Positions 10,363 to 55,434 of a DNA stretch of 64,000 nucleotides are shown here, piece by piece. The position numbers and the translations under genes were made by a program. The notes under the pieces are model-generated. The model searched no databases, was not told the origin of the DNA, and was given only the letters and a program-made list of their open reading frames with translations. Within the stretch, counting starts at the first letter, position 1; each line of letters begins with the position of its first letter. The stretch comes from Macrostomum lignano (Eukaryota), in the NCBI GenBank assembly GCA_002269645.1, contig NIVC01004039.1, forward strand, positions 1 to 64,000, written 5' to 3'.

Positions 10363-11926
10363 TGCCAAGTTTGGATGATCAACTTCACTGTCAATAAATT
10401 CATGAGAAAGGCAAAGATGGAATGAATGCTTTTAATATTAAAAACCGAAGTATATAAAATGGTATGTTATGTACTTGAAATATGAGTTTTTCAATAGAAA
10501 TCAGTAATATATTTGTTTTATCTATTTAAATATTTAAAAAATTATGACTAATACAACACTTACAGTATCATATAGCTATTTCATTTCTATGTTAGCACAT
10601 ATTTTGATGGAATGATTTGTTCAATTGATATAGTCTATAATATTAGTTATTAGTTAATATTGAAAAAATATTCAATTATTAAATTTATAAATTATATAAA
10701 ATTATGTCATCTTATTTTAACATTTCAAAAGTTTGTGACTACAAATTTTAGAGGTTTAGGTATAAAAGGTACCAAAGCCCGAAGTGTATAATGTTAACTG
10801 ATAGACACTCTACCCATCACATCAGATCATTGTATTTGTCTGCTGTAAATTGTAGACAATTGTTGCCAACCCAACTGCAGACACGCGATCAAAAACCAAA
10901 AAGGATTTTTTCGCCTAGCAGGCCGAGGTGTGATTTGCTTGATCTCCTTTCCCAAAAACATAAAGTGGTGAAGATTTTGTATCAGTAAAAGATAATGTAT
11001 TTTAGATAACTAAATGTGTCATTGACTCATTACAGTAGCCGTTTATTGTAGTCTTAAATTACTAGGGGGTTCCAGCAGGGGGTTCCAGCAGGGGGTTCCA
11101 GCAGGGGGTTCCAGGAAAAAAAGCGAAAAATTCAGTAATGTTAAAATTTGTGATCTAAGCTTTTACGCTGCTAGTTAAAAGCCATTTACTTAATTTATAC
11201 ACATTTTGTTTTCTTAAGACTGAGGCACATAATATGTTATGCAATATTGTTCTGGTCAATATAACGTTGTTGTTATAACTTGTAGTATAGTTCTAAATCA
11301 AATGTAAAAAAGAAATTACAAAATTGCAATTGCTAAAATAAGAGTTCGACGAAGGTTAGTTCAGCATCAAATTCTATGCTTTCATGTTTGTAGAGCTTAT
11401 ACATGATGCTATGGTAAGGAAATTATTGTCGGCGTAGAAGTCGGTTCTGTCCAGATCATGTCTAATATACTGCTTCCACTTATCCTTAGGCCTATCTTCA
11501 TGTGTACATTATGTACATGCATTAGGGGCTTTTAGGGCTATCCCACTTTTACCTTTTAGTCTACCTACTACTACCTAGTACCTAAGGCCTAGGCTAGGCC
11601 TATGCTATGGATGGCTATGTGTATAAAATTTTTGTTATAGTGGGACCCTTTCTATTTAAATTTTGTAGGCTTGTAGGTCTTTGTTAATTTTTAAATCTAT
11701 TTTAGGCCCTATTAATAATTTTATAGCATTCCTAGTGCTAATCCACTCTCCCCAAGATGCTGTTTTCTCCACAAATTTGTGGCATGCATGAGGGTTTTTG
11801 GCCCCTGCACTGCGTGCATTATCACGTGCAGTGAGACTTCATGCACAGTGCATATATAAAATTTTTGTATGCAGCTGTGCCATAGCCTCATAGGCCTAGT
11901 CTCAAAGATGTTCCATGCATGCAACC

Positions 11927-12513
11927 CATGGTCAGGAAGGTGCAGCGTGTGCGCCGGAATAACATCCATCAAAATTTTTGTTGTGCGCCGCGTGCGCCGA
12001 GAAAAAAAAATTACTTGTGCGCCGCGTGCGCCGAGAAAAAAAAATTACTTGTGCGCCATGCGCCAAGAAAAATACACTTGAAAAAGCACCATCAAGTATT
12101 AAGTATCTAAATTGAATCAATATCAATGGAAGTTCAAGCAGTTCAATCATAGCTTCTATTTGCAAAATATAAGCAAAAAGACGCAACAAAAGCCGCGAAA
12201 GGCGCAAATTTGTTAAGTTTGTTAAGTCGATTAATGAAATTTGAAATAGAAACAACATTGGAAATAACGACTATCGTATCGACTATCGTTTATTTTATTG
12301 ATTGATTGACATTTAATATACAATATCATTATTATATTGTCACGTACACTGACGTACCTTGTGCGCCATGCGCCGAGCCATGCACCAATGCACCGAGCCA
12401 TGCGCCGATGCGCCGAACCCATGCGCGCGGCGCAGTGAAGTGTGCGCCGTGCGCCGGCAAATTGCTGATTTGCGCCGGAAAATTCCGAGGATTCTACCGT
12501 CTTCCTGGCTGTG
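11927..12513. mobile_element. Putative non-autonomous TIR element (Mutator-like MITE)
   Basis: Imperfect terminal inverted repeats catggtcaggaag / cttcctggctgtg (10 of 13 match). Flanking direct repeat GCATGCAAC at 11917-11925 and 12514-12522 is a TSD of MULE length (9-10 bp). The interior is rich in tgcgcc motifs. Confidence 0.5.
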
Positions 12514-14893: not shown

Positions 14894-22421
<7,528 letters not shown>

Positions 22422-22632: not shown

Positions 22633-23403
22633 GTATCCATGGCAACTATCTCTGTATCAATGGTAACAATCTGGTATCCGTGTAAAAAGAGAACATTTCA
22701 ACCGTAACCTACAGTCTCCGTAACCAAGGTAATGGTTCCCGAATTCATGGTTATGAGTTCCGTAACCATGGTAACAGTCCTGTATCTATGGTAACAAGCT
22801 TCATATCTATGGTAACAAGCTTCATATCCATGGTGACAAGCTTCATCCATGGTAACAAGCTTCATCCATGGTAACAAGCTTCATATCCATGGTAACAAGC
22901 TCTGTAACCATGGTAACAAGCTCTGTAACCATGGTAACAGTCCCCATATCCATGGTTACAATCTCCGTAACCATGGTAACAGTCCCATCCCCATATCCAT
23001 GGTTACAATCTCCGTAACCATGGTAACAGTCCCATCCCGATATCTATGGTTACAATCTCCGTAACCATGGTAACAGTCCCATCCCCATATCCATGGTTAC
23101 AATCTCCGTAACCATGGTAACAGTCCCATCCCGATATCTATGGTTACAATCTCCGTAACCATGGTAACAGTCCCATCCCCATATCCATGGTTACAATCTC
23201 CGTAACCATGGTAACAGTCCCATCCCGATATCTATGGTTACAATCTCCGTAACCATGGTAACAGTCCCATCCCCATATCCATGGTTACAATCTCCGTAAC
23301 CATGGTAACAGTCCCATCCCGATATCTATGGTTACAATCTCCGTAACCATGGTAACAGTCCCATCCCGATATCTATGGTTACAATCTCCGTAACCATGGT
23401 AAC
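22633..23403. repeat. X-box-bearing repeat array 3' of SRP54 (18-21-bp units, then a 47-bp unit x10)
   Basis: 47-bp unit ccatggtaacagtcccatccccatatccatggttacaatctccgtaa. Exact GTAACCATGGTAAC at 22762, 22904, 22925 and every 47 bp from 22967 to 23390. Confidence 0.93.
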
Positions 23404-24495
23404 AGTTATTAGTCACCATTTTCCTAGTTGATGTCAGTATTGTTACGAGAAGAACTCGTGAAAAGTTGTAATATCTGATTGCCTTGAAGCAGAATTTCTT
23501 ACCCCAGTGGCTAAGATGAAAGAAATTAATTCTGAGTTCGTTTTGTTTTTTTGTTTAAACTTGCTTCATTGAATTTATTGAAAAGTGGCGTCCTGCTCTC
23601 TGTGTCATTTCCTCTTATCTGTGCCCTCCAGCGTCATTTGATATTGTGTTCTACTAGACTAACTGAACAGTTGCAGGTATTCTGTCTATCCGGAACGGAT
23701 TTCCGTGGTGAATGGGTTTTGCGGGTCTGTTTAGAGTATGTATATGCATGTCAGAGAGCCAGCTCTCCGCTGCTTTGCCTATCGTATTTTATTACTTTTT
23801 TCATGTGTTTGCCTGCCTACTAATGTAACTGTAAATGGCTACTGTCAGTAGTGTAGCCGGCGTTCATTCTCTCCTATTTTCGCATACTTGACAACATATA
23901 TTCATACTACAGAGCATGCCTTCATCAATTGAGTATGGATTAAGTTTTTTATGGATTCTGTTAATTATAACTCTAATGTGCTTGTACTACTACTTTCTTG
24001 CTGTGCAAACTAAATAGCTTTGTAATCGAGTGAAATCAAAATTTAACTAATTGCATGGCATAACCATCCAGTTGAAATACTGGCGTGTTTCAATTGACAC
24101 ATTCCCGACACAGTTTCTCTCTGGTTGTGTCGCCTGTCAACCTGCAATCAATATTCTAGCTACGGTTCTCTGTCTGCTCAGCTTATCTAACTCGCTTTAA
24201 TTGCCTGCTGGTAGAGATCTCTTGTGCTTTTCATGTTGGCTCACTAGCTGTCCCCCTGATAGAGAGACTTTTTGCCTTGCCCTGTCCGTGTAATTGTCCT
24301 GCTCTCTTGGCGTGATTCAATTATATAATAAACTGATTGCTTCATTCTGTTGGCCCTAAAGATTTCTGCTGGATTCGTGGTTGGATAAATTAAAAATGAG
24401 ATTCTAAGAAAGTGATATTTCTTGTGTTTATATATTTAGGCATTAAACATCCGGGCTCTGCAGCTTTTGACTGCCAGCCACAGTTTCACTGCGAA

Positions 24496-25105
24496 CCTAA
24501 ACCCTCTAACCTAAACCCTACCCTTTAATCTAAACCCTACCCCCTAACCTAAACCCTACCCCCTAACCTAAACCCTACCCCCTAACCTAAACGCTACCCC
24601 TAACCTAAACCCTACCCCTAACCTAAACCCTACCCCCTAACCTAAACCCTACCCCCTAACCTAAACCCTACCCCCTAACCTAAACCCTACCCCCTAACCT
24701 AAACGCTACCCCCTAACCTAAACCCTACCCCCTAACCTAAACCCTACCCCCTAACCTAAACCCTACCCCCTAACCTAAACCCTACCCCCTAACCTAAACC
24801 CTACCCCCTAACCTAAACCCTACCCTCTAACCTAAACCCTACTCTCTAATCTAAACCCTACCCCCTAACCTAAACCCTACCCCCTAACCTAAACCCTACC
24901 CCCTAACCTAAACCCTACCCCCTAACCTAAACCCTACCCCCTAACCTAAACCCTACCCCTAACCTAAACCCTACCCCCTAACCTAAACCCTACCCCCTAA
25001 CCCAAACCCTACTTCCTAACCTAAACCCTACCCTCTAACCTAAACCCTACTTCCTAACCTAAACCCTACTTCCTAACCTAGACCCTACCCCTAACCTAAG
25101 CCCTA
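24496..25105. repeat. 18-19-bp telomere-like C-rich repeat, ~33 copies
   Basis: Unit taacctaaaccctacccc(c); the minus strand is GGGGTAGGGTTTAGGTTA. Confidence 0.95.
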
Positions 25106-25614
25106 CCCGCATCCCTGCTACAGATAAATATCGCTGCATCCAGCAGGACTTAATGTACATGCTAAACTTTCAGGCACTAAACTGTGAATTTCTGTTAGTT
25201 CGTTGAGGAACAAATTTCTCTAATGGCAGTCCCAGTGTGGCAAAGGAAATTGGAATCTTTCTCAGTGCGCAGTTCTAAAATTAGCGGCCGAAGTAAATGC
25301 CGAGACAGACAGTTGTTGATTTTCACAGTTGCAGCGGATCCGCGGAATGCGGCAGCTTGCTTCGGCTATTTGCCGGCAGTTTAAGAGTGACGGCTCTCCC
25401 TCATCTCTCTGCATGGCTAAAGTTGAATTCTTAGCCTCTGAAGGCTGTCCAAATCCCTCAGACAGTTCTTGTCAGAAATGTTACTCCTTTGAAGGCGTGC
25501 ATGCGGTTAAACTGTGATTCGGGCAGTCTTTAAAGCCCTCTCCCTGAAACTGCCGAGGAGAGCTAAAATGATAGGATCTGAAATCTACTGAGGGGGTACC
25601 AGATACAAAGAGGG

Positions 25615-32438: not shown

Positions 32439-34312
32439 TGATGAGGACGCACTTTTATCCAAATTTCACGCTCGCACATGGGCTCCAAACTGGCTAGCCT
32501 ACTAACAGCAGGCTATGGGCATTTTTCTCCTTTTTTGTAATTTTTCTAGAATTCATACTAGTAGGACTTTTGTAGCTATATGAATCTGCCATACTTGTAG
32601 TTATAATGACATAGGCGCGATTTTTTGCTGCTTTTGGGGTCATAAATCATTGCTTTTGAGCTGGTCTGACAGCCACCTGCGCCTCACTCAGTGTTGAGGC
32701 TGGCGCCAAATGGTCTGAGAGGATGCGGGCGATAGCTTTTTCTCATCATTTTTGACAGGCCATCAGATTTATGAGATCAGGGCCTATTGTTCGTGTTCAC
32801 TCAAGCGTTTGACAGCTTTGACAGCTATGCGTTTTACCCCTAAAAGTACTTTGGGATTAGCGATTAGCGATTCCTCTTCACCATCTTCACTTTCTACTTA
32901 ATTAGAGCTTTCTAATGCATATTTTTCATTAATTTTTGTCATTCCTACGCGAAAGGTCATAAATCATTATGTAGCGATTTTGAGTGAGTTATGACTGCAC
33001 CTGGCGTATTTTTATGGCCTCGAGGGAACTGATAGGATCTTCTGGTCACGTGAGTTTGGGTGGCAACAAGCTCAGCCAATCAGAAAATTCGACGTCAGTT
33101 ATAACTCATAGCCATAACTTATAGCTCAGCCAATCAGCGTCGAGGTGTTCCATTATAACGAATTGCGGTCCAGTTGGCGGCTATTTAAATCGGTGTTTTT
33201 GGCCCGCTCGGACCTCAACCTCCTGGGACCTTGGCCTAACTTAGACCTCCCGGAGCTCGACCGTCGTCTCTTGATCCCCGGATCGCAACTTACCCCGTCA
33301 CCATCAAGGACGAATTCCCCCGGTCGTCAGCAGCGAACATCAAGGTTAAGATCATCACCTGCTAGCTATCTGCGAAGATTGTGACATCAGCATCATCCCG
33401 GGTCTACAGCTGCGAAGCACTAAGCCGATTCGGTCACTGTGGATTACCTGGTCTCCGGCTGTTGAGTTTCTGATTGGTTTGGTGAGAGGCTGCCTAGACT
33501 TGCTTGATTGGGTGATTCCTTATCTGTCCCCTATTTCAGTAGCTGGATTAGGCGCACACATTTGCTCATTTTGTTCAGTAGTGCTGTTGCTGAGGCAAAA
33601 GTCATTCAATAATACTGCTAGTAGTCTGAAACTCCAATTCAATCTGAAGTGTGAAGGGATTTAGTGAGAAGGTTAAATCTGACAGTTATTTTATCGGTTT
33701 TATTTCTTTATTCGCCTATGGCTCAGATGAGTAGCTCGGGTAATGAATCATGCGGTCTCTGAAGTTCGAGGTAGTCTATCATCAGCGCTACGAGAGGCTG
33801 GTTGGCGCGTTGAAAGCCAAAAGTACAACTCCTCGTATTTAGCTATGTATAGTACATGTAACTACCCCATAGTCTCGCCACTGCAAGAATCCCCTGCACA
33901 AGTCCCCTCTGTACCTGCATGGCCAATGCGATCTAGTCCCAGCAGTGTCCCTTATCATCGGCTATGACTTCGAGATTGACAGCTAAAAGGCACTAGTTGG
34001 CAGGTAAGTGCTAAGCCCCCTCTAGTCGGAAGCCCGATTTCGAAAGTTCCGGTTTGGTGAGCCAGGACGCAGGGGCTGGTGGCGGCGGGTTAGTTAATCT
34101 GCGGATTAGCTGATCTCTACCTTCAAAATTCTCCCTGCTTGTCTCTCGCTGTCCCTCTCTTAGCTATAGGACCTAGACTGCTCGCCACAGATCAAGCTAC
34201 CATGTGGCTGACCATCTGACAGGAGTGGGGGGCCAGGACTCTAATTGATTTATTTCTGAGACCTGAGGCCCGAAGGCTTCCACAAAGGAGCCGAAAAGGC
34301 CGAAACCCATCA
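32439..34312 (+). mobile_element. Solo LTR copy A (1874 bp), Ty3/Gypsy-like by TSD length
   Basis: Termini TGATG...CATCA; flanks AGAT/ATAT (4-bp TSD, 1 mismatch); CCAAT at 33076 and 33130, TATTTAAA at 33182; homologous to copy B at both ends; no PBS or PPT in the flanks. Confidence 0.8.
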
Positions 34313-34362: not shown

Positions 34363-37300
34363 ACGAGGGGTGCGCAAAAAGTTTTGGCAACTGGGTTCCC
34401 AATTGCAGATAAATTGTTGGTACATCTTTAAACTCTAAAGTCCTACAATGTAATCACCGCCACGTTCTATGCATTTCTGATGACAATGGATCCATGCCTC
34501 GAAGGCAGCGGGGTATTCTGAAGCTGGCATGGTGTTCAGCTCTGAATTAATGCGGCGAGTCAGGTCTTGGGGCCGCTGAAAATGGCATCCAGCCATGCGT
34601 TCGGTCAGCTTTGGGAAGGCCCAGAAGCCGCAGGGCGCCAAGTCAGGACTGTATGAAGGGTGCGGTATCACCTTGAGCTTGTTATCGGCCAAAAAGCTCG
34701 TTGTCATGGCCGCAGTGTGGCTGGAGGCGTTGTCGTGGTGCAAGTGAATTCTGCCAAGGTTGGCTGCTTTTCCATGACTGAAGCCACGACTATAACCAAA
34801 CCTGGCCAGTAAGCACTGGAAAAGTGCTTACATCGCAGCGAAAACACTGCTGCCTCCTCTCGTCTAAAGGAAAAATAAAAAGAGCCGCCTGCGAACGCGT
34901 GATGCAGTTGACACGCTTTGCTTTGGGGGGCAGTATAGAATGTGGCATTCATGTTCTGTCCATTTGGCCCCATAACAACTGTCTCTGGCCCAGATGCTGA
35001 AAAAGATGACGAACATCTGCGTCCGTGAGCGAAAACCCAGGGCGCATAACAGTTGACGGTCTTCATCGGAACCAATCCAAACCAATTGTTTTGGTTATTG
35101 TTGGAAGTAGTAAAACCACTTCTCGTCACCAGTCACGACACCAGTAATTAGTCGCTTATTGTGCCACCTTCGCCGAAGCATCGCAGAAATTCTTGGCTGT
35201 GATGGGTTCGGCCTTTTTAAGCCTATAGCTTCGGGCCTCAGAACTCAGAAATGAATCACTTAGAACTCTGGCCTCTCACTCCTGTCAGATGGTCAGCCCC
35301 ATGGTAGCTAGACTGTGGGCGAGCAGCAAGGTCCTATAGCTAAGAGAAGACAGCGAGAGACAAGCAGGGAGAATTTGAAAGGTAGAGATTAGCTAATCCG
35401 CAGATTGACTAACCCGCTGCCACCAGTCCGTGCGCCCCGGCTCACCATACCGGAGCTATCGAAATCGGACTTCCGACTAGAGGGGAATTGAATTAACCTG
35501 CCATCTAGTGCCTTTTAGCTGTCTAAATCTCGAAGTCATAGCCGAATAGAAGGGACGCTGCTGGGACTAAGATCGCATTGGCCATGCAGGGACAGAGAGG
35601 ACTTCTGCAGGGGGTTCTTGCGCTGGCGACGAGCCTCTATACACTACTAACTGTACTATTTCTTTACCAAATTCCCAGAAGTACATGTATCAGTACACGC
35701 AACTGCACGCTTTTGGCACTAAATGTGTTAACATGTCGACAGATAGCGATGATGTAGATGTATTTGTTACTTTTGGAGACCTTCTGACTAATATTTATCT
35801 CGTTCTAGCCGCTTAGCTGCCTGCGACCACGCGAAAGCGCCAGTCTGGCACTTAATTCGCATGCTTATCATGATTTCTGAGAACGACTGATTGACTGAGA
35901 ACTGCGCCGCTTCCGGTCCACTCTGACCTCTGCCCCTAGATCTAGCCACTCATGTCAGCTGGTATTGCGAAAAAGAAAGAAAACATTAAGTCTTTAGCTT
36001 CCAGATTATTTAACTTTCTCACTTAATCCGCAATCCTAGACACTTTAGATTGAGTTAGAGCGATGGCTACTTTTAATATTAACTGACACTTCTGCCTCGA
36101 GTTTGGCACACAAAAGCAAGTAAGCAAAAGTGCAAATCCTATCAGACTACCTAGGAAGGGGTCAGACAAAGGGCGCACCCAGTTAAGCAGGTCAAGAAAG
36201 CCTCTCACCAAACCAATCAGAGGACCTATCTGCCGGTAGCCAAGGAATCCACAGAGACCGCAGCGCTCGGATGGGATGCTTAACTGACGAGTGCCGCCGG
36301 TACTCTTCATCTGCCGGTTGTCGTTGCTGCTCTTAGATCACTGCCGGGAAATATCGATGATGCTTCTCAGGGGGAACTTAGCTGCTGAAGCCGGAACGGC
36401 CGGGGGAAGGGGGACCAGACGTCGAAGACGCAGCAGATGCCGAAGGGGCCGTCTAAGACGGGGTTAGGACCGTGCAAGAAGGAAGGTCCAAGCCGGCCTT
36501 TTCGAGCGCGGGTCGAGTTGCCGCCTTTTATAGCTCTCATGCGGCCGATTTGTTATAACGCGCGCCGAATTTTCTGATTGGCTGAGAGCTTTTGATAAAA
36601 TAGGCGCCGAATTTTCTGATTGGTCGAGCCGGGGGCAGTCAGGTCGACTCTGATTGGCTGAGCTCAAGACCCCAAAACCCACCCTACCAGGTGGCCTTCA
36701 GACCCCAGGGAAGATGACAGGTGCGGTCATAAATCATGCGCAAAACATAATAAATGTCACTTGTCTAGACATCCTGGCGCCAAAAGTGACAGCAAAACAC
36801 CCATAAATTAAAAGAAAAAGTAACAGAGCGAGTGGGGAGAAAGCTGGAAAGACCTCTTTGACCCAGACAGGCTGGAGCCAAAAGTGACAGCTAGACCGCC
36901 ATAAATCAATGAAAACAGTGAAAAAGCCGCAAATCTGGGGGTCAGAATGGGGTTGAAACCATTCCTTCCAGACTTAGTGTCGCCCGTCTAGACTGCTAGA
37001 GGTCAATCCGTCGTCTCAAACCCAGACAGTCTGACCTTCAAAGATGCGTAAACAATCCAAAATTAGAATCCTAAGAGAAGTACATTAAGTATTCATCATA
37101 ATTAATAGTGATGGCATAAATTAGTGTAGAACTTACTGGTAGCCTGGATGAGAGAATGGAGAGAGATTCCTAAGCTAGCCTACTGACAGTAGGGGAAAAG
37201 CGCATCGAAGCGAAATGTGCGGTTTTAAGATTGCAAAAAGATGCGTCCTCATCAGCTGCATCGAACCCTCTCCTGCTTCTGCTCTGCTATGAGTGCATGA

Positions 37301-40893: not shown

Positions 40894-41525
40894 CCAAGCA
40901 TGCTCCTATTTATCATCTCTCATACACGCACAACTGCTAGCCAATCTGGCCACCATTATTGTGGTGGACCATAAGTAAGTTGCAGAAATGTCCACCCAAA
41001 GAATATGGAAGTAGTAGTAGTACTAATTAGATGAAGAAGCATTTAGCCTTTATTCTGGCCAGATAAGGGAAGGAGACAGGCGGAGGTTGGGGTGGCTGTC
41101 TCGATGACAAAAAACAGACTAACTTTAAAAGTGAATGGCGCCATTCAGAATTAAGTTTGAGACTCGAAATTGTACACGATTGTGTCAAAGTAGTTGATTG
41201 TTTGTGTCAAATTTGAAGAGGATTGGTAAAAGTGAAGCAATGATATTGACGATTTAGTAAAAAACCTGTTTTGAGCAGTTTTTTGCACTTTTAGGTAAGT
41301 TTAAAGGTAGCCTAAGATATTCTCCGTAGTGAGTTTAGGATGGGTGCAAAATGTGGTGTAATTTGGTTGAGCGGTTTGGGAGTCCATAGCGAACAAATTT
41401 GTCCACAGACACAGAGTTTTCATTTTTATAGGTAGAGAAGCTAGTACAATGCTATGCTTTCAGTTCAATTTTTATAGATTATTACAATAGATTCTATACA
41501 TAATTAGCTTTTGCCTAAAACTTTG

Positions 41526-44380
41526 ATGATACAGCTTAGTAACCAGACTACAGAGGGAGGAGCGTGTCTGCTCACTGCTGTGCAGGACTCACTGCGCAGG
41601 GCTGGCTGCAGTAATGGCTCAATCAGCGGCCCAAGCACCTCCCGAGTTCGAAACCCGCTGATTGGCCACCTGCTAGAGCAGCGGCTAGAGTTTGTTCCAT
41701 CGCCTGGCAACTGGGATGCTAAGGTGCTTGAGAAACTAAAACAGCTTGGCGCTACAATACTGACTACTGCAGCAGTTCCTGCTGTGCCGCCTGCTCAACT
41801 ACTGAGCAGCAAAGATTGCCAGGCTGTTAGCGAGGCTCCTAAGAAGCTAGCACAGCCAGTGCAGAAGTCGGACGCCAAGAAGCCGCAGTTCAGTTTTGCT
41901 TCTGTGCAGCTCGACCGGCCCTACCATGGCCAGCCCTGCGGATTCGCCAACGAGGGCAACTATTGCTACATGATCTCAGTGCTGCAGGCGCTCATTCACA
42001 CCGCTCCGTTTGTCAACTTTGCCTGCGAGCACCGGACCGTATCGGCCTGTCGTCAGGTGGACAATCGCGGCCTGTTTAACCAGCATGGGCAACGGCAACA
42101 TCCGGGACACCAGCAGCGGCAGCATCAGCCGGCTCGCTGGTGCGCAGTCTGCGAGCTGGCCGCCTATGCCCAGCGACCAAGCGGCAGCGGCGCCGTCTAT
42201 CCTCGCGCATTCATGGCCAAAGTGACCACCGTGTCGCCAACTTTGCGCCCAAATCGGCAAGAGGACGCGCACGAATTCATGCGCTGCCTGCTGGACTATA
42301 TGGAGCGCAATTGCGGCGGGGATAAGCGCCGATCAGCCGGCTCGCCAGCTGGTCCGATCCGGGTGCTGTTTGGCGGCCGGCTGAAGTCCTCGGTGCTGTG
42401 CACCAGGTGCGGCACAGAGTCGCGCACATTTGAAGACTTCATGGACCTCAGCCTGTGCATCCAGTACAGCTCCAGCCTGGCTGACTGTCTGCGCAAATTC
42501 GTGTCCCCGGATCTGCTCAAAGATTCCAACGCTTATAAATGTGAGAAATGCCGGACTAAAGTGACTGCTAAGAAAAGTTTCAGCATTGCGTCTGGCCCGC
42601 CAATATTAACAGTGCAGCTGAACCGATTCCAGTGGGGCCATAGCAACAAGATCAGCCGGTTCGTGCAGTTCCCCCTCAGCATCGATCTCAGGCCGTACAT
42701 GTCCAAGCCTGGCCGCCCTGTGCACTACGAACTCTACGCGTTGGTTATTCACCAGGGCTCCAGCACCAAGTTCGGGCATTATTATTGTTACGCTAAACGC
42801 GGCAACGCCTGGTGGTCGTTAAATGATTCCTGCGTCGATCGAATCAACGAGTCGCGTGTACTGCAGTCTTGCCCCTATATTCTGCTGTACAAACGGACCG
42901 ATTTGAGTCCCCTGATTGAGTCGTCCACCGTTGCTTCCGCTGCGGCTTCCAGTAACCTGTCTGTTGGAGACGCTAATTCTCTATCCTCGCCGGTTGCCAT
43001 GGCGACTGGCGGCATTACTAAAAGCCAATCGCTTGTCAAGCCAAAACTGGAATCTGCCAACTCGATTGCTATGGCAACAGGAAATGATTCATTTTCTCCA
43101 AAGCGCGCCAAGTACGATCTCACACCCTCCAACTCGGTTGCCATGGTAACCGGCAACGGTCCTTCAGGTCTGTCACAGACGAAGAACCATCAGACATCTA
43201 GCTTGGTTGCCATGGTAACCGGTAACGGTCCTGTAGGCCTGTCGCAGGCTAAGCACAAGCAGGCGCCCTCAAATTCGGTTGCCATGGTAACCGGTAACGG
43301 TCCACAAAGCTTGTCGAGTACTATGTCGCAACCGAAACTTAGTAACGGGCCTCAAAGCCAAGCGCATGCCAAACCCAGATCAGGATCTGCCAATGCGGTT
43401 GCCATGGTAACAGGCAACGGTCCGCTATCCCCGGGGCATACCAAACCAAAACCTACATCTGCTGCTGAGACAACCGTCAACGGGCCGCTAAGCCTATCCA
43501 GCTCTAAGCCACAACCGATGCAGCAACTAGCTCACGGCACCAAAGTTGCCATGGCAGCAGCAGCAGCCGGCTGTCAGCAGATGCGAAACAAGCCTAACAA
43601 AGAGCTGCGCCAATTGATGTCTGCCAGTCCGCGGCGCCCCGACCCGCTTCCGTGGAGCGCTAATTCCTCGCCACAGAAATCGGAGTCTCTGATTCCCAAT
43701 GGTGTGTCCATTAACGGCAGGAAGCGGAAAGTCAGCGACAGTCAATCTTCGGCCAGTTCGTCCCTGTGCGATCAGGTTTGTCTGTTTATTTATTATTGGT
43801 AGACAAACAAACACTATTATAGCGTTATAGGAAATGTTTTGTATATGCTGGAAATAGAATATACCGATAGAAATATGCCTTACCCACTTACTCAGTGAAT
43901 TAGCTATCCGCGACCAACTTTGCTTTACCTTTGCATAAATGCCGTCGGTGATAACCCACTGGGCTAAGCAACCCCAATATATTGCCAATTACTAATAGTA
44001 GAAATGAAAAAAGGGACATTATTGAGGATTGGGAAATGTATTTAAAAATTTCTAGGCTTGTATTTTTTTTCTCCATGGAATATTACTAATGGCGAGATCT
44101 ACTTACAGTACGGTTTGATCAAAGTTATTGTGGGGTTTTTTAGCTATAGGTTTACTGTTGATTAGTAGCATATAATGTAAAAATTATAATTCAGAAATGT
44201 GATAAAAAATTCTCTTTGCAGCTGTCCGCCCAAAACCAATCTGAGCTGGACAACAAAAAGCGAAAGAAAAAAGAAGCCAAACGCAAGCTCAAACTGTTGA
44301 AGCTGCAGCAGAGCTCTGGCAGTGCTGCCAGTCTTGCGAATGGAATCGATTCAGTGGTGTGCAACGGGCACGTCGACTGA
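41526..44380 (+). CDS. USP36: Ubiquitin-specific protease, USP36/USP42 family; start codon tentative
   Basis: Exons ~41526-43775 and 44222-44380 (phase 0). LLEQRLEFVP..LEKLK family motif, Cys box GFANEGNYCYMISVLQAL, QEDAHEF, His box HQGSSTKFGHYYCY...NDS, basic C-terminal KKRKKKEAKRK. Confidence 0.88.
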
Positions 44381-44527: not shown

Positions 44528-45066
44528 CTGCCTCCAGCCAGCCGAACCCCCACCCCACTCCCAATGTACACTGCCTCCAGCCAGCCGAACCCCAACCCCA
44601 CTCCCAATGTACACTGCCTCCAGCCAGCCGAACCCCCACCCCACTCCCAATGTACACTCCCTCCAGCCAGCCGAACCCCCACCCCACTCCTAATGTACAC
44701 TGCCTCCAGCCAGCCGAACCCCCACCCCACTCCCAATGTACACTGCCTCCAGCCATGGCCGAACCCCAACCCCACTCCCAATGTACACTGCCTCCAGCCA
44801 GCCGAACCCCCACTTCACTCCCAATGTACACTGCCTCCAGCCATGGCCGAACCCCACTTCACTCCCAATGTACACTGCCTCCAGCCATGGCCGAACCCCA
44901 ACCCCACTCCCAATGTACACTGCCTCCAGCCATGGCCGAACCCCAACCCCACTCCCAATGTACACTGCTTCCAGCCATGGCCGAACCCCAACCCCACTCC
45001 CAATGTACACTGCCTCCAGCCATGGCCGAACCCCAACCCCACTCCCAATGTACACTGCTTCCAGTC
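44528..45066. repeat. 43-45-bp minisatellite 3' of the USP stop, ~12 copies
   Basis: Unit ccagcc(atg)gccgaaccccaaccccactcccaatgtacactgcct. Confidence 0.95.
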
Positions 45067-46164
45067 AGCCAAGTCCTGACCAAGTCTAAATTTTGATTTT
45101 GTTCGAGCAACAAATTAATAAAGTTAGGCAATTTTTTCATGTGCCTTTTACGCGCTATCAAAAAGACAATAAAATTACTCGGAATAAGGACATCAATATT
45201 GTACCTAATACTTGTTACAATTGATTCTTTGCCTAAATAATCACTCATTATGTAATATAGTAATCGATTTTTAATAAACTGACTTCTTAATGGTTCATTT
45301 TGCTTGATCATATGTCACACATGGCAGTCATTGAAAGCTTTATTTTTTGTCTGGTAATTTGGATCTACAATGTTTTTATAACTCCATAGTCATTTACTGT
45401 TTATAAATGAAAAGAAATTACAGGACTGTCACTAATTCTATCCCCGATCAGGTGTCAAGCAGTTTACCTGTCAAGCAGACCTATATTTTCCTAAATTGTA
45501 AAAAAAACCATTTTAACTTATTTTTCCTATTATTCTTGAAGTTTAAAGTTTTAAAGGTTGCTGCCAACGTGTTCTGTTGTATTGCAATTTTTTTTTTAAC
45601 AACTGTGCATAACTCAAGCTTTTGAGCAGTAAATGAATTATTTTAAATCATAAATTGACATCATAATTTTATTTAAAATGGCTTAGATTTAAAGCAGTTT
45701 TAAATAATTTCGATTCACATAAATATTTTTATCATAGTGTTAAAATTTAATAGTTGAAATAGTTCTGGCTATCAATAATTTTCTCTGCTCCTTTCTAACT
45801 AATTTGGTGCCGTGGACCTCACAAAATGCTGATGGGGTTTTTGACACCTTTTCCTGCTTGATTGCTTGGTTTAAGGTTTTTTGTCTGTTATCTTTTATAT
45901 AGCAGCTCCTAGCTAATTTCACGCGTTGCTGCTTCATGTTAGTGCTTTTTGCATTTGTTTTGCCAAAATTATATTTCATTTATCCGCTTCAAGTTTGCTG
46001 GCAGACTGCCGGACGGCGTTCATTGAACTTTTTGGTGTATATTTTGGAGGAATAAAAATTGCTAACCTACTGGGCCTGAGCTCAGTCTGAAGAAATTTGA
46101 GCTTTTGTTCTTTGCATTGGCTTTTTGTTTGATTCTCAAGTCCATATGAAGCAATTAATTATTG

Positions 46165-46866
46165 CCAGTGTCTATCTGCGGTAGCTGAGTGATTGTCAGT
46201 GTCTATCTGCAGTAGCTGAGTGATTGTCAGTGTCTATCTGCAGTAGCTGAGTGATTGCCAGTGTCTATCTGCGGTAGCTGAGTGATTGTCAGTGTCTATC
46301 TGCGGTAGCTGAGTGATTGTCAGTGTCTATCTGCAGTAGCTGAGTGATTGTCAGTGTCTATCTGCAGTAGCTGAGTGATTGTCAGTGTCTATCTGCGGTA
46401 GCTGAGTGATTGTCAGTGTCTATCTGCGGTAGCTGAGTGATTGTCAGTGTCTATCTGCAGTAGCTGAGTGATTGCCAGTGTCTATCTGCGGTAGCTGAGT
46501 GATTGTCAGTCTATCTGCGGTAGCTGAGTGATTGTCAGTGTCTATCTGCGGTAGCTGAGTGATTGTCAGTGTCTATCTGCGGTAGCTGAGTGATTGTCAG
46601 TGTCTATCTGCAGTAGCTGAGTGATTGTCAGTGTCTATCTGCGGTAGCTGAGTGATTGCCAGTGTCTATCTGCGGTGGCTGGGGGATGCTAGTAGGAATC
46701 TGCGGTAGCTGAGTGACGCCAGTAGGAATCTGAGGTAGCTGAGTGACGCCAGTAGGAATCTGCGGTAGCTGAGTGACTCCAGTAGGAATCTGCGGTAGCT
46801 GAGTGACGCCAGTAGGAATCTGCGGTAGCTGAGTGACTCCAGTAGGAATCTGCGGTAGCTGAGTGG
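46165..46866. repeat. 31-bp minisatellite switching to a related 30-bp unit, upstream of STAT
   Basis: cagtgtctatctgcggtagctgagtgattgt x~16, then ccagtaggaatctgcggtagctgagtgac(g/t) x~5. Confidence 0.95.

Positions 46867-46977: not shown

Positions 46978-55434
<8,457 letters not shown>

Follow-up and report, generated by a model that had tools for sequence, protein, structure and literature searches.

A coding minisatellite with X-box-like cores in a USP36/42-like deubiquitinase gene from Macrostomum lignano

Introduction

Intragenic coding variable number tandem repeats (VNTRs) situated in disordered regions are known from MUC1, PER3, exon 3 of DRD4 and the FLO/ALS adhesins of yeast, and the Jeffreys-type concept of minisatellites is that of families with a common core. 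At the protein level, the tandem SUMO-interaction motifs (SIMs) of RNF4 are an array of short linear motifs in a disordered tail; the strict SIM pattern is psi-x-psi-psi or psi-psi-x-psi, where psi is V, I or L at three of four positions. At the DNA level, the X-box promoter elements bound by RFX proteins (the targets of DAF-19, dRfx and RFX1-8) are single and promoter-proximal, and belong to ciliary or MHC-II genes. The X-box consensus is GTNRCC-N0-3-RGYAAC, with GTTRCY as the monomer, i.e. the half-sites are inverted (PMC10530576). Transcription factor motifs that overlap codons, with a claimed effect on codon choice, have been described as duons or exonic enhancers (PMC4745165).

Here we analyse a repeat of Macrostomum lignano that touches on all of these systems. 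The window, that is, the whole stretch of 64,000 nucleotides under analysis, is 100% identical to contig NIVC01004039.1, which is L004 among the four assembled copies of the locus. We favour its interpretation as an ordinary coding VNTR, with the X-box as an incidental or, at most, an unproven feature, and give this reading a probability of about 0.7.

Results and Discussion

The host gene

The repeat lies in a large exon on the forward strand (41511..43775), the open frame of which is unbroken over 763 codons in the ORF listing; the following intron opens at GT 43776. The exon encodes a UCH catalytic domain at full domain length (PF00443, 2.8e-54; residues 143-460, about nt 41937-42890), with the Cys and His boxes of USP36/USP42-type deubiquitinases (peptidase C19), and the catalytic columns C152, H414 and H423 are invariant in the alignment. 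The best protein matches are M. lignano BOX15_Mlig028393g1/002344g2 and UniRef entries named “USP36”; the names of the matches mix USP36 and USP42, and assignment to a USP36/42-like class rests on these names together with the domain. The remainder of the exon 3' of the UCH domain encodes the tail. AF2 predicts the catalytic core confidently and gives the tail a pLDDT below 50, without secondary structure, so that the preliminary description, which spoke of a USP36 coding sequence with a disordered tail, is borne out for a gene of USP36/42 type. The genes of the window are an EF-hand, a calreticulin-family, an SRP54, a trypsin-like, the USP36-like, a 672-aa “SH2” and a GPCR-like gene.

Similar tails could not be found outside the gene's own cluster in an exhaustive search of 1.84e9 representative proteins, which was adopted because a word-indexed search with the tail was uninformative, missing even P0001 (98% identical). 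The sole other match of the exhaustive search, P0128 (E=3e-4), is a repeat protein of metagenomic origin with no X-box in its DNA, and was rejected as a chance hit.

An in-frame tandem repeat of variable copy number

The imperfect tandem repeat spans 42984..43571 on the forward strand, and codon register defines seven units, starting at 42984, 43056, 43128, 43197, 43269, 43389 and 43536. All unit lengths are multiples of three, the reading frame stays open, and the repeated peptide core is S-N-S-[VI]-A-M-[VA]-T-G-N-G-P. A decayed unit (GCT GCT GAG ACA ACC GTC AAC GGG CCG, encoding AAETTVNGP; forward strand, 43461..43487) is identical to the intact core at 18 of 27 nt, its X-box gone and its N-G-P retained, and a further N-G-P without the core is read from the codon-register alignment at 43344-43352.

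The same gene is found in contigs L001, L002 and L003, which are 94-99% identical to the window, with nine units as against seven. TRF reports a period of 69-72, with 2.5 copies in the window and 4.5 in the other three contigs. The extra units of these contigs have spacers 100% identical to that of unit 4, and cores that are mosaics of other units. Spacers had been described as diverged almost beyond recognition; this is overstated, given that units 3-5 align with 76% identity in TRF and that three adjacent units of the other contigs share 100% identical spacers. Every one of the non-coding minisatellites flanking the gene also differs in copy number among the same contigs.

The array is young and variable in copy number. 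Its head-to-tail units with lengths that keep the frame open, its copy-number difference at one locus, its position in an unstructured tail and its lineage specificity are those of a coding VNTR. It is unlike the known examples in that its units are strongly diverged outside a core of 9-12 residues, two being core-less, and in that the four assembled copies could be either alleles or duplicated chromosome blocks; such blocks are contained in the M. lignano assembly (PMC5730564).

Fit of the units to the X-box consensus

All seven 14-mers of the preliminary description were located, in frame on the forward strand of the exon's 3' half and with core spacings of 72/72/69/72/120/147. Four of them are exact GTTGCCATGGTAAC cores (43137, 43206, 43278 and 43398, spanning 43137..43411), i.e. 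perfect 14-bp X-boxes with a 2-nt spacer that also match the monomer GTTRCY in both halves. Three of these four run, as had been noticed, into an overlapping zero-spacer site, GTAACC-GGYAAC (43146, 43215 and 43287). Units 1 and 2 (42993..43078) are of an older V/I-A-M-A-T type: the core of unit 1, GTTGCCATGGCGAC at 42993, conforms to the consensus when read on the minus strand and not otherwise, and that of unit 2, ATTGCTATGGCAAC at 43065 (with GTTGCT in other contigs), fails to fit. The core of the last unit, GTTGCCATGGCAGC (43545..43558), which encodes V-A-M-A-A and lies 46 nt upstream of the peptide L-R-Q-L-M-S-A, fails likewise. The description of the array as matching the canonical RFX consensus can therefore be kept for five of the seven units on at least one strand (four of them perfect), a fit far above chance, and has to be dropped for 43065 and 43545. 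With up to two mismatches, the 14-mer has 40 matches in the window compared with 0.35 expected from shuffles, all except one of them inside the coding array or an array at 22.6-23.4 kb, and every consensus match in the window belongs to the coding array or to this second array on the SRP54 side.

These sites might be functional RFX dimer sites, acting as an exonic enhancer or other element, with selection on DNA on top of that on the peptide. Four units speak for such a role with the exact consensus and both monomer halves, and the three further units have one good half-site. However, known X-boxes differ from this array in number and position: here the candidate sites are repeated inside the 3' coding exon of a deubiquitinase and are not promoter-proximal, there is no promoter near the array, the start of the downstream gene is more than 3 kb away, and no ciliary or RFX-type neighbour is present among the genes of the window. 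Two of the seven units are off consensus, and the zero-spacer sites decay, being absent from units with ACA and ACT/AAT. In the assembled copies the first base of the motif is polymorphic or lost (GTT to ATT, V to I; GTT to CTT, V to L), and these changes keep the hydrophobic residue class while abolishing the G that the consensus requires. Searches of the literature found no paper about M. lignano RFX sites, which also speaks against this role, and none about X-box minisatellites. We consider RFX binding with selection on the DNA improbable.

Selection on the peptide, and codon choice

Nei-Gojobori counts over six VAMVT-type units, the other haplotype included, give pS 0.55 and pN 0 for the T-G-N-G-P codons and pS=0 for the V-A-M-V codons, while pN/pS is 0.05 for the whole core compared with 0.63 for the spacers. 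T-G-N-G-P varies at synonymous sites only, and the peptide itself must therefore be selected: the peptide core is under purifying selection. It had been proposed instead that the DNA motif is what is constrained, with the peptide as a by-product. This is not supported by the T-G-N-G-P counts, nor by the two further occurrences of N-G-P without the X-box or the V-A-M part, by the variation between seven and nine units, by the loss of the motif's G to A or C with retention of V, I or L, and by the fixation of the codon GGT in the same way as GTA.

Codon choice within the motif is nonetheless one ground for adding selection on DNA to that on the peptide. None of the three synonymous sites of the 14-mer varies among the six units, as against eight of ten comparable flanking sites, although this contrast (nominal p 0.008-0.06, depending on the null) is post hoc and based on three sites in related, non-independent copies. 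Resampling of codons for the given peptide, which supposes independent codon choice, yields on average about 2 X-box sites in the tail, compared with 8 observed. Synonymous positions of the motif had been described as fixed, which is true of the VAMVT units (GTT, GCC and GTA in 4/4 here and in 6/6 with the other haplotype), and not of the older VAMA units, where GCT and GCG occur at Ala codons. These older units retain 7/9 of the motif's synonymous-site bases despite their unrelated spacers. Codon preference was rejected as the cause of the fixed GTA, which is a rare codon (7% of Val); descent fits instead. GGT, also rare (4% of background Gly) and outside any X-box, is likewise fixed in 6/6 units, and so shared descent accounts for the fixed codons. 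The array resembles duons in that a transcription factor motif overlaps codons and an effect on codon choice has been claimed, and differs in that the motif is a predicted site, its codon signal amounts to three sites in related copies, and the encoded peptide can be shown to be under selection.

The paralogue and more distant homologues

The array is absent from the paralogue P0002/P0003, and the 23.7 kb of the paralogue locus have no match to the X-box consensus. The paralogue tail does hold ATTGCAATGGCAAC, one mismatch from unit 2 and in a different reading frame. It sits 48 nt before the motif L-x-Q-x-M-S-A, a tail anchor that a pattern search found to be common to the two genes, the corresponding distance in this gene (L-R-Q-L-M-S-A; forward strand, 43605..43625) being 46 nt. 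Retention of an X-box-like 14-mer in another frame would favour a role of the DNA itself, but half of ATTGCAATGGCAAC can also be explained as in-frame G-N-G homology, with a left half that matches by chance. Synonymous divergence between the paralogues has reached saturation (pS 0.70), and local alignment shows no general DNA homology between their tails; the best local match, a (GCA)n run, was discarded, being equalled by 12/300 codon shuffles. No X-box is found in three distant USP36 homologues (S. mekongi and two Logan transcripts), a point against the RFX reading.

A second array and the structure of the core

A non-coding minisatellite with a similar core lies about 20 kb away, downstream of SRP54 (forward strand, 22633..23407), beginning 212 nt past the stop codon of the last SRP54 exon (21918-22421, SRP_SPB domain). 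It has about 33 units of ~21 bp, organised into 47-bp higher-order units, with the core [GA]TA[TA]C[CT]ATGGT[AT]AC, and thirteen units are exact GTAACCATGGTAAC. A second X-box array within the window would be in keeping with RFX binding, and the core of about 10-14 nt that the two arrays share, the rest of the unit differing, recalls Jeffreys-type families. Unlike those families, the likeness is confined to two arrays within the window: tandem arrays number 27 and make up 27% of it, and the other 25 have unrelated units without an X-box-like core. The array near SRP54 is ordinary-looking as non-coding minisatellites go; simple and tandem repeats account for 15% of the M. lignano genome (PMC5730564). 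A system of X-box arrays at the 3' parts of housekeeping genes, as had been suggested, is conjectural beyond the two arrays of these 64 kb.

The shared core could point to a property of DNA structure. The near-palindrome CCATGGTAAC / GTTGCCATGGTAAC, whether protein-bound or not, would be prone to slippage or recombination, seed arrays and be preferentially homogenised. Its presence in two independent arrays in 64 kb with variable spacers, the mosaic units with their recombined cores and spacers, the variable copy number, and the long hairpins into which cores of adjacent units pair (z=-3.2 in a fold with RNA parameters) are all compatible with this. Against it, the 25 arrays that lack the core mean that this genome forms arrays without it. 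Homogenisation would moreover be limited to about 15 nt, and usual conversion tracts are longer than this. The amino acid conservation of T-G-N-G-P would be left unexplained, and we regard a structural cause as doubtful, to much the same degree as RFX binding.

The same pairing has been considered at the level of RNA, where it could shape the mRNA and thereby affect translation, stability or internal splicing, ATG/GTAAC being similar to a 5' splice site. The predicted fold is stable (MFE z-score -3.19, with 0/100 shuffles equally stable), but any array of near-palindromes yields such stability automatically, and covariation and transcript support are absent. The gene model P0122, which appears to splice inside the array, is an artefact that masks a 1-nt deletion in L003. 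A role in RNA thus seems very improbable. GCCATGG as repeated internal starts in Kozak context, and ATG/GTAAC as internal 5' splice sites, were set aside for want of transcripts.

The broadest form of the case for DNA is that X-box-like palindromes are functional elements at the DNA level in M. lignano, RFX-bound or as recombinogenic minisatellite cores, that are kept within coding sequence and across the frame change of the paralogue and dictate part of the protein repeat. This is unlikely, if somewhat less so than its particular versions. Points counted against the VNTR reading are the invariant synonymous sites of the motif, the 7/9 bases in the older units, ATTGCAATGGCAAC of the paralogue and the second array.

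Origin and possible function of the repeat

Under the coding VNTR that we prefer, a unit of ~24 codons would have been duplicated in tandem in a USP36/42-like deubiquitinase specific to this lineage, within its intrinsically disordered C-terminal tail. Unequal recombination or slippage would still add, remove and shuffle units, as in the non-coding minisatellites that abound in this genome, with selection holding the core S-N-S-V-A-M-V-T-G-N-G-P while the linkers between cores drift. The DNA that encodes V-A-M-V-T would be an X-box by coincidence, about two X-box matches in the tail being expected from the peptide at the codon usage of this gene, and the identity of codons among copies would be due to common descent and homogenisation. 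We infer that the X-box is incidental and that the core is a binding motif, most likely a short linear motif whose repetition would give the tail multivalent binding to a putative partner; a separate DNA code beside the peptide is possible.

A SUMO-type beta-strand interaction is a candidate, as a lead only. Like SIM arrays, the repeat has a hydrophobic V-A-M-V flanked by Ser/Thr, seven to nine copies, variable linkers and a position in a USP36-type disordered tail, but V-A-M-V, with Met at its third position, misses the strict SIM pattern. Human USP36 is a SUMO ligase (PMC10164564); a comparable repeat was not found in human USP36 in the searches made.

As matters stand, this is one further tandem repeat within a gene, in a genome that is exceptionally rich in repeats. 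It cautions that a peptide repeat can generate and multiply a palindromic transcription factor motif, and that identical codons across tandem copies are non-independent evidence of constraint. If the DNA-element reading were true, the locus would offer a clean example from nature of how a DNA element, structural or bound by a transcription factor, constrains the sequence of a protein, and since transgenesis works in M. lignano (PMC5730564), synonymous recoding could test this directly. The conserved peptide S-N-S-V-A-M-V-T-G-N-G-P is, in addition, a candidate for a new interaction motif in an enzyme of USP36 type.

A tandem coding repeat in a USP36/42-like deubiquitinase

The array occupies 42984–43571 on the forward strand, within a single open frame (41511–43802, with a splice donor after 43775) whose best protein match is Macrostomum lignano BOX15_Mlig028393g1. 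Over 22.8 kb the window aligns at 100% identity with contig NIVC01004039.1 (assembly GCA_002269645.1). Named relatives of the exon's protein are of the USP36/USP42 type, and a full UCH (peptidase C19) domain at residues 143–460 is modelled confidently by AF2. In the same model, tail residues 481–755 lack secondary structure and their pLDDT is under 50; with no alignment depth over these residues, this is weak but consistent support for disorder.

Protein comparisons show that the repeat is lineage-specific. The paralogous proteins P0002 and P0003 (63% identical in the best local alignment, covering about 45% of the query and mainly the catalytic domain) carry no such array, and HMMER, run exhaustively against 1.84 billion representative proteins, returned only the protein's own cluster and one marginal match. 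The latter is an unrelated metagenome protein.

The array keeps codon register: its seven units are 23–49 codons long, every length being a multiple of three, and each begins S-N-S-[VI]-A-M-[VA]-T-G-N-G-P. Units 5 and 6 are each double. The second half of each keeps N-G-P-x-S, but in one of them the V-A-M part is missing altogether and in the other there is a decayed copy, AAETTVNGP (43461–43487). Three other contigs of the assembly, 94–99% identical overall, encode the same gene with nine units. The spacers of the two extra units are 100% identical to that of unit 4, while their cores, with ACT-GGC-AAT, are like that of unit 3, and the units are therefore mosaics. In one of these contigs, L003, the array (about 11770–11915) carries a frame-breaking 1-nt deletion, which the deposited gene model P0122 masks with a 143-nt “intron”; either the assembly is wrong here or the copy is a pseudogene. 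The M. lignano assembly holds duplicated blocks of at least 95% identity, and tandem and simple repeats account for 15% of the genome (PMC5730564).

We give a probability of about 70% to a mechanism in which the coding repeat arose by tandem duplication and would still be unstable, the conserved core would be a short linear peptide motif displayed seven to nine times in a disordered tail, and the X-box, the RFX dimer site, would be a by-product of the V-A-M-V-T codons passed to all copies.

Minisatellite surroundings

In its behaviour the coding array resembles the neighbouring non-coding arrays. The window contains 27 minisatellite arrays, making up 27% of its sequence, and copy number differs among the four contigs for every array near the gene, including the intronic or intergenic arrays at 44528–45070 (12.4 versus 9.4 copies), 46161–46865 (23 versus 11–13), 52135–52759 (19.8 versus 20.8 versus 24.8) and 53968–54689 (39 versus 43).

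GACAG/CTGTC is present in 7 of the 27 consensus units, and there are long tetranucleotide runs of (TGTC)n (1–668), (ACAG)n (48153–48330 and 51438–51501) and (GACT)n (53252–53601). At 24501–25108 the 19-bp unit ACCCCCTAACCTAAACCCT recurs about 32 times; it resembles degenerate telomeric CCCTAA hexamers in an internal location. An inverted repeat pair (33874–34275 and 35229–35629, each about 400 bp and about 950 bp apart), with reverse-strand matches in L003 at about 87%, could represent a foldback or the remains of a transposon.

X-box matches and selection on the peptide

The preliminary description read the unit cores as canonical RFX sites under constraint as DNA. All seven 14-mers (starting at 42993, 43065, 43137, 43206, 43278, 43398 and 43545) were found with the spacings and positions it claimed, and three zero-spacer sites lie at 43146, 43215 and 43287. 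Against the published consensus, GTNRCC N0-3 RGYAAC (PMC10530576), canonical status holds in part: four of the seven are perfect, those at 43065 and 43545 fail, and that at 42993 fits on the minus strand only. Every one of the 25 consensus matches across the 64 kb lies in the coding array or in an array at 22.6–23.4 kb, and chance does not account for the pattern.

The further claim that the peptide is a mere by-product is contradicted by Nei-Gojobori counts over six V-A-M-V-T units (four from the window and two from L001, a nine-unit contig). pN/pS is 0 in T-G-N-G-P (pS 0.55, pN 0), 0.05 in the whole core V-A-M-V-T-G-N-G-P (pS 0.33, pN 0.017) and 0.63 in the spacer (pS 0.53, pN 0.33), and there is therefore purifying selection on the peptide. 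Nor is rare-codon fixation peculiar to the X-box. GTA, 7% of valine codons in non-repeat parts, is fixed in six of six units, as is GGT in N-G-P (4% of glycine codons), which lies outside any X-box; rare codons are fixed inside and outside the X-box because of descent from one unit. The TCG preceding the motif retains its G in all units. Independent codon resampling from the peptide alone gave about 2 X-box sites on average versus 8 observed, with 0 of 20,000 resamples reaching 8, in a test that wrongly takes copies as independent. As for the supposedly fixed synonymous positions, three V-A-M-V sites are invariant in the six units, but older units have GCT and GCG.

The first motif codon of unit 2 reads ATT in the window, where the other contigs have GTT; CTT occurs inside the 14-mer in one of the extra units of the nine-unit type. 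These V/I/L exchanges are informative: they suit a hydrophobic peptide position, yet abolish the G1 that the consensus requires. Units with ACA or ACT/AAT lack the overlapping zero-spacer site. Several observations speak against the 14-mers being functional RFX sites, one form of a DNA-level reading. They lie within a 3′ exon, the next gene starts over 3 kb away, and none of the window genes is ciliary; the X-box is also absent from USP36 homologues in Schistosoma mekongi and two transcript assemblies. No literature tying RFX to such arrays was found. RNA folding of the array is strong (z −3.2), an automatic result of repeated near-palindromes.

Hints of a DNA-level effect

The DNA-level reading overall, in the form of RFX binding or of a structural or recombinogenic core, has roughly one chance in four. 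Synonymous sites vary in 0 of 3 cases in V-A-M-V versus 8 of 10 comparable surrounding sites, giving p = 0.035 (hypergeometric), 0.06 (two-fold sites excluded) or 0.008 (naive) for three sites in related copies, spotted post hoc. ATTGCAATGGCAAC, one mismatch from unit 2, occurs in the paralogue tail (L005, the paralogue locus, at 12355), 48 nt upstream of L-L-Q-F-M-S-A in P0002; the window gene's last unit lies 46 nt upstream of L-R-Q-L-M-S-A, a peptide common to both paralogues. An equally close match arose in 0.08% of codon shuffles of the paralogue tail, and a scan of about 175 kb gave no other. Synonymous sites between the paralogues are saturated (pS 0.70), and their tails otherwise have no significant DNA similarity. 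The frame over ATTGCAATGGCAAC differs from the window's V-A-M-A-T and reads N-C-N-G-N, in a (GCAATK)3 hexamer run, GCAATGGCAATTGCAATGGCAAC (L005 12341–12368), that contains it and encodes N-G-N-C-N-G-N in the P0002 tail. An in-frame alternative aligns G-N-G-S with G-N-G-P-S, so that the right half-site would be peptide homology and only the left half is left to chance. The homeologue P0003 has N replaced by S in the region of the run.

The second array (22633–23407) is a non-coding minisatellite of about 33 units of about 21 bp, beginning 212 nt past the SRP54 stop. Its core is [GA]TA[TA]C[CT]ATGGT[AT]AC, the exact X-box match GTAACCATGGTAAC occurs in 13 copies, and its 3′ part has 47-bp and 94-bp higher-order units. 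A rough estimate, not a calculation, puts the probability that 2 of the 27 arrays would have an X-box core by chance at well below 1%; this coincidence, too, was spotted post hoc.

An SRP subunit gene adjoins each USP36-like paralogue, the paralogous gene lying directly 3′ of SRP72 (L005 1–8697) and the window gene about 19 kb downstream of SRP54 (21918–22421).

Meaning of the repeat

We infer a linear-motif function for the core peptide. Human USP36 has SUMO ligase activity (PMC10164564), which makes a SUMO-type beta-strand interaction a lead, although V-A-M-V fails the strict SIM pattern. The idea of a dual code is already known from exonic transcription-factor sites and is not established for this array, which belongs to a known kind, the intragenic VNTR.
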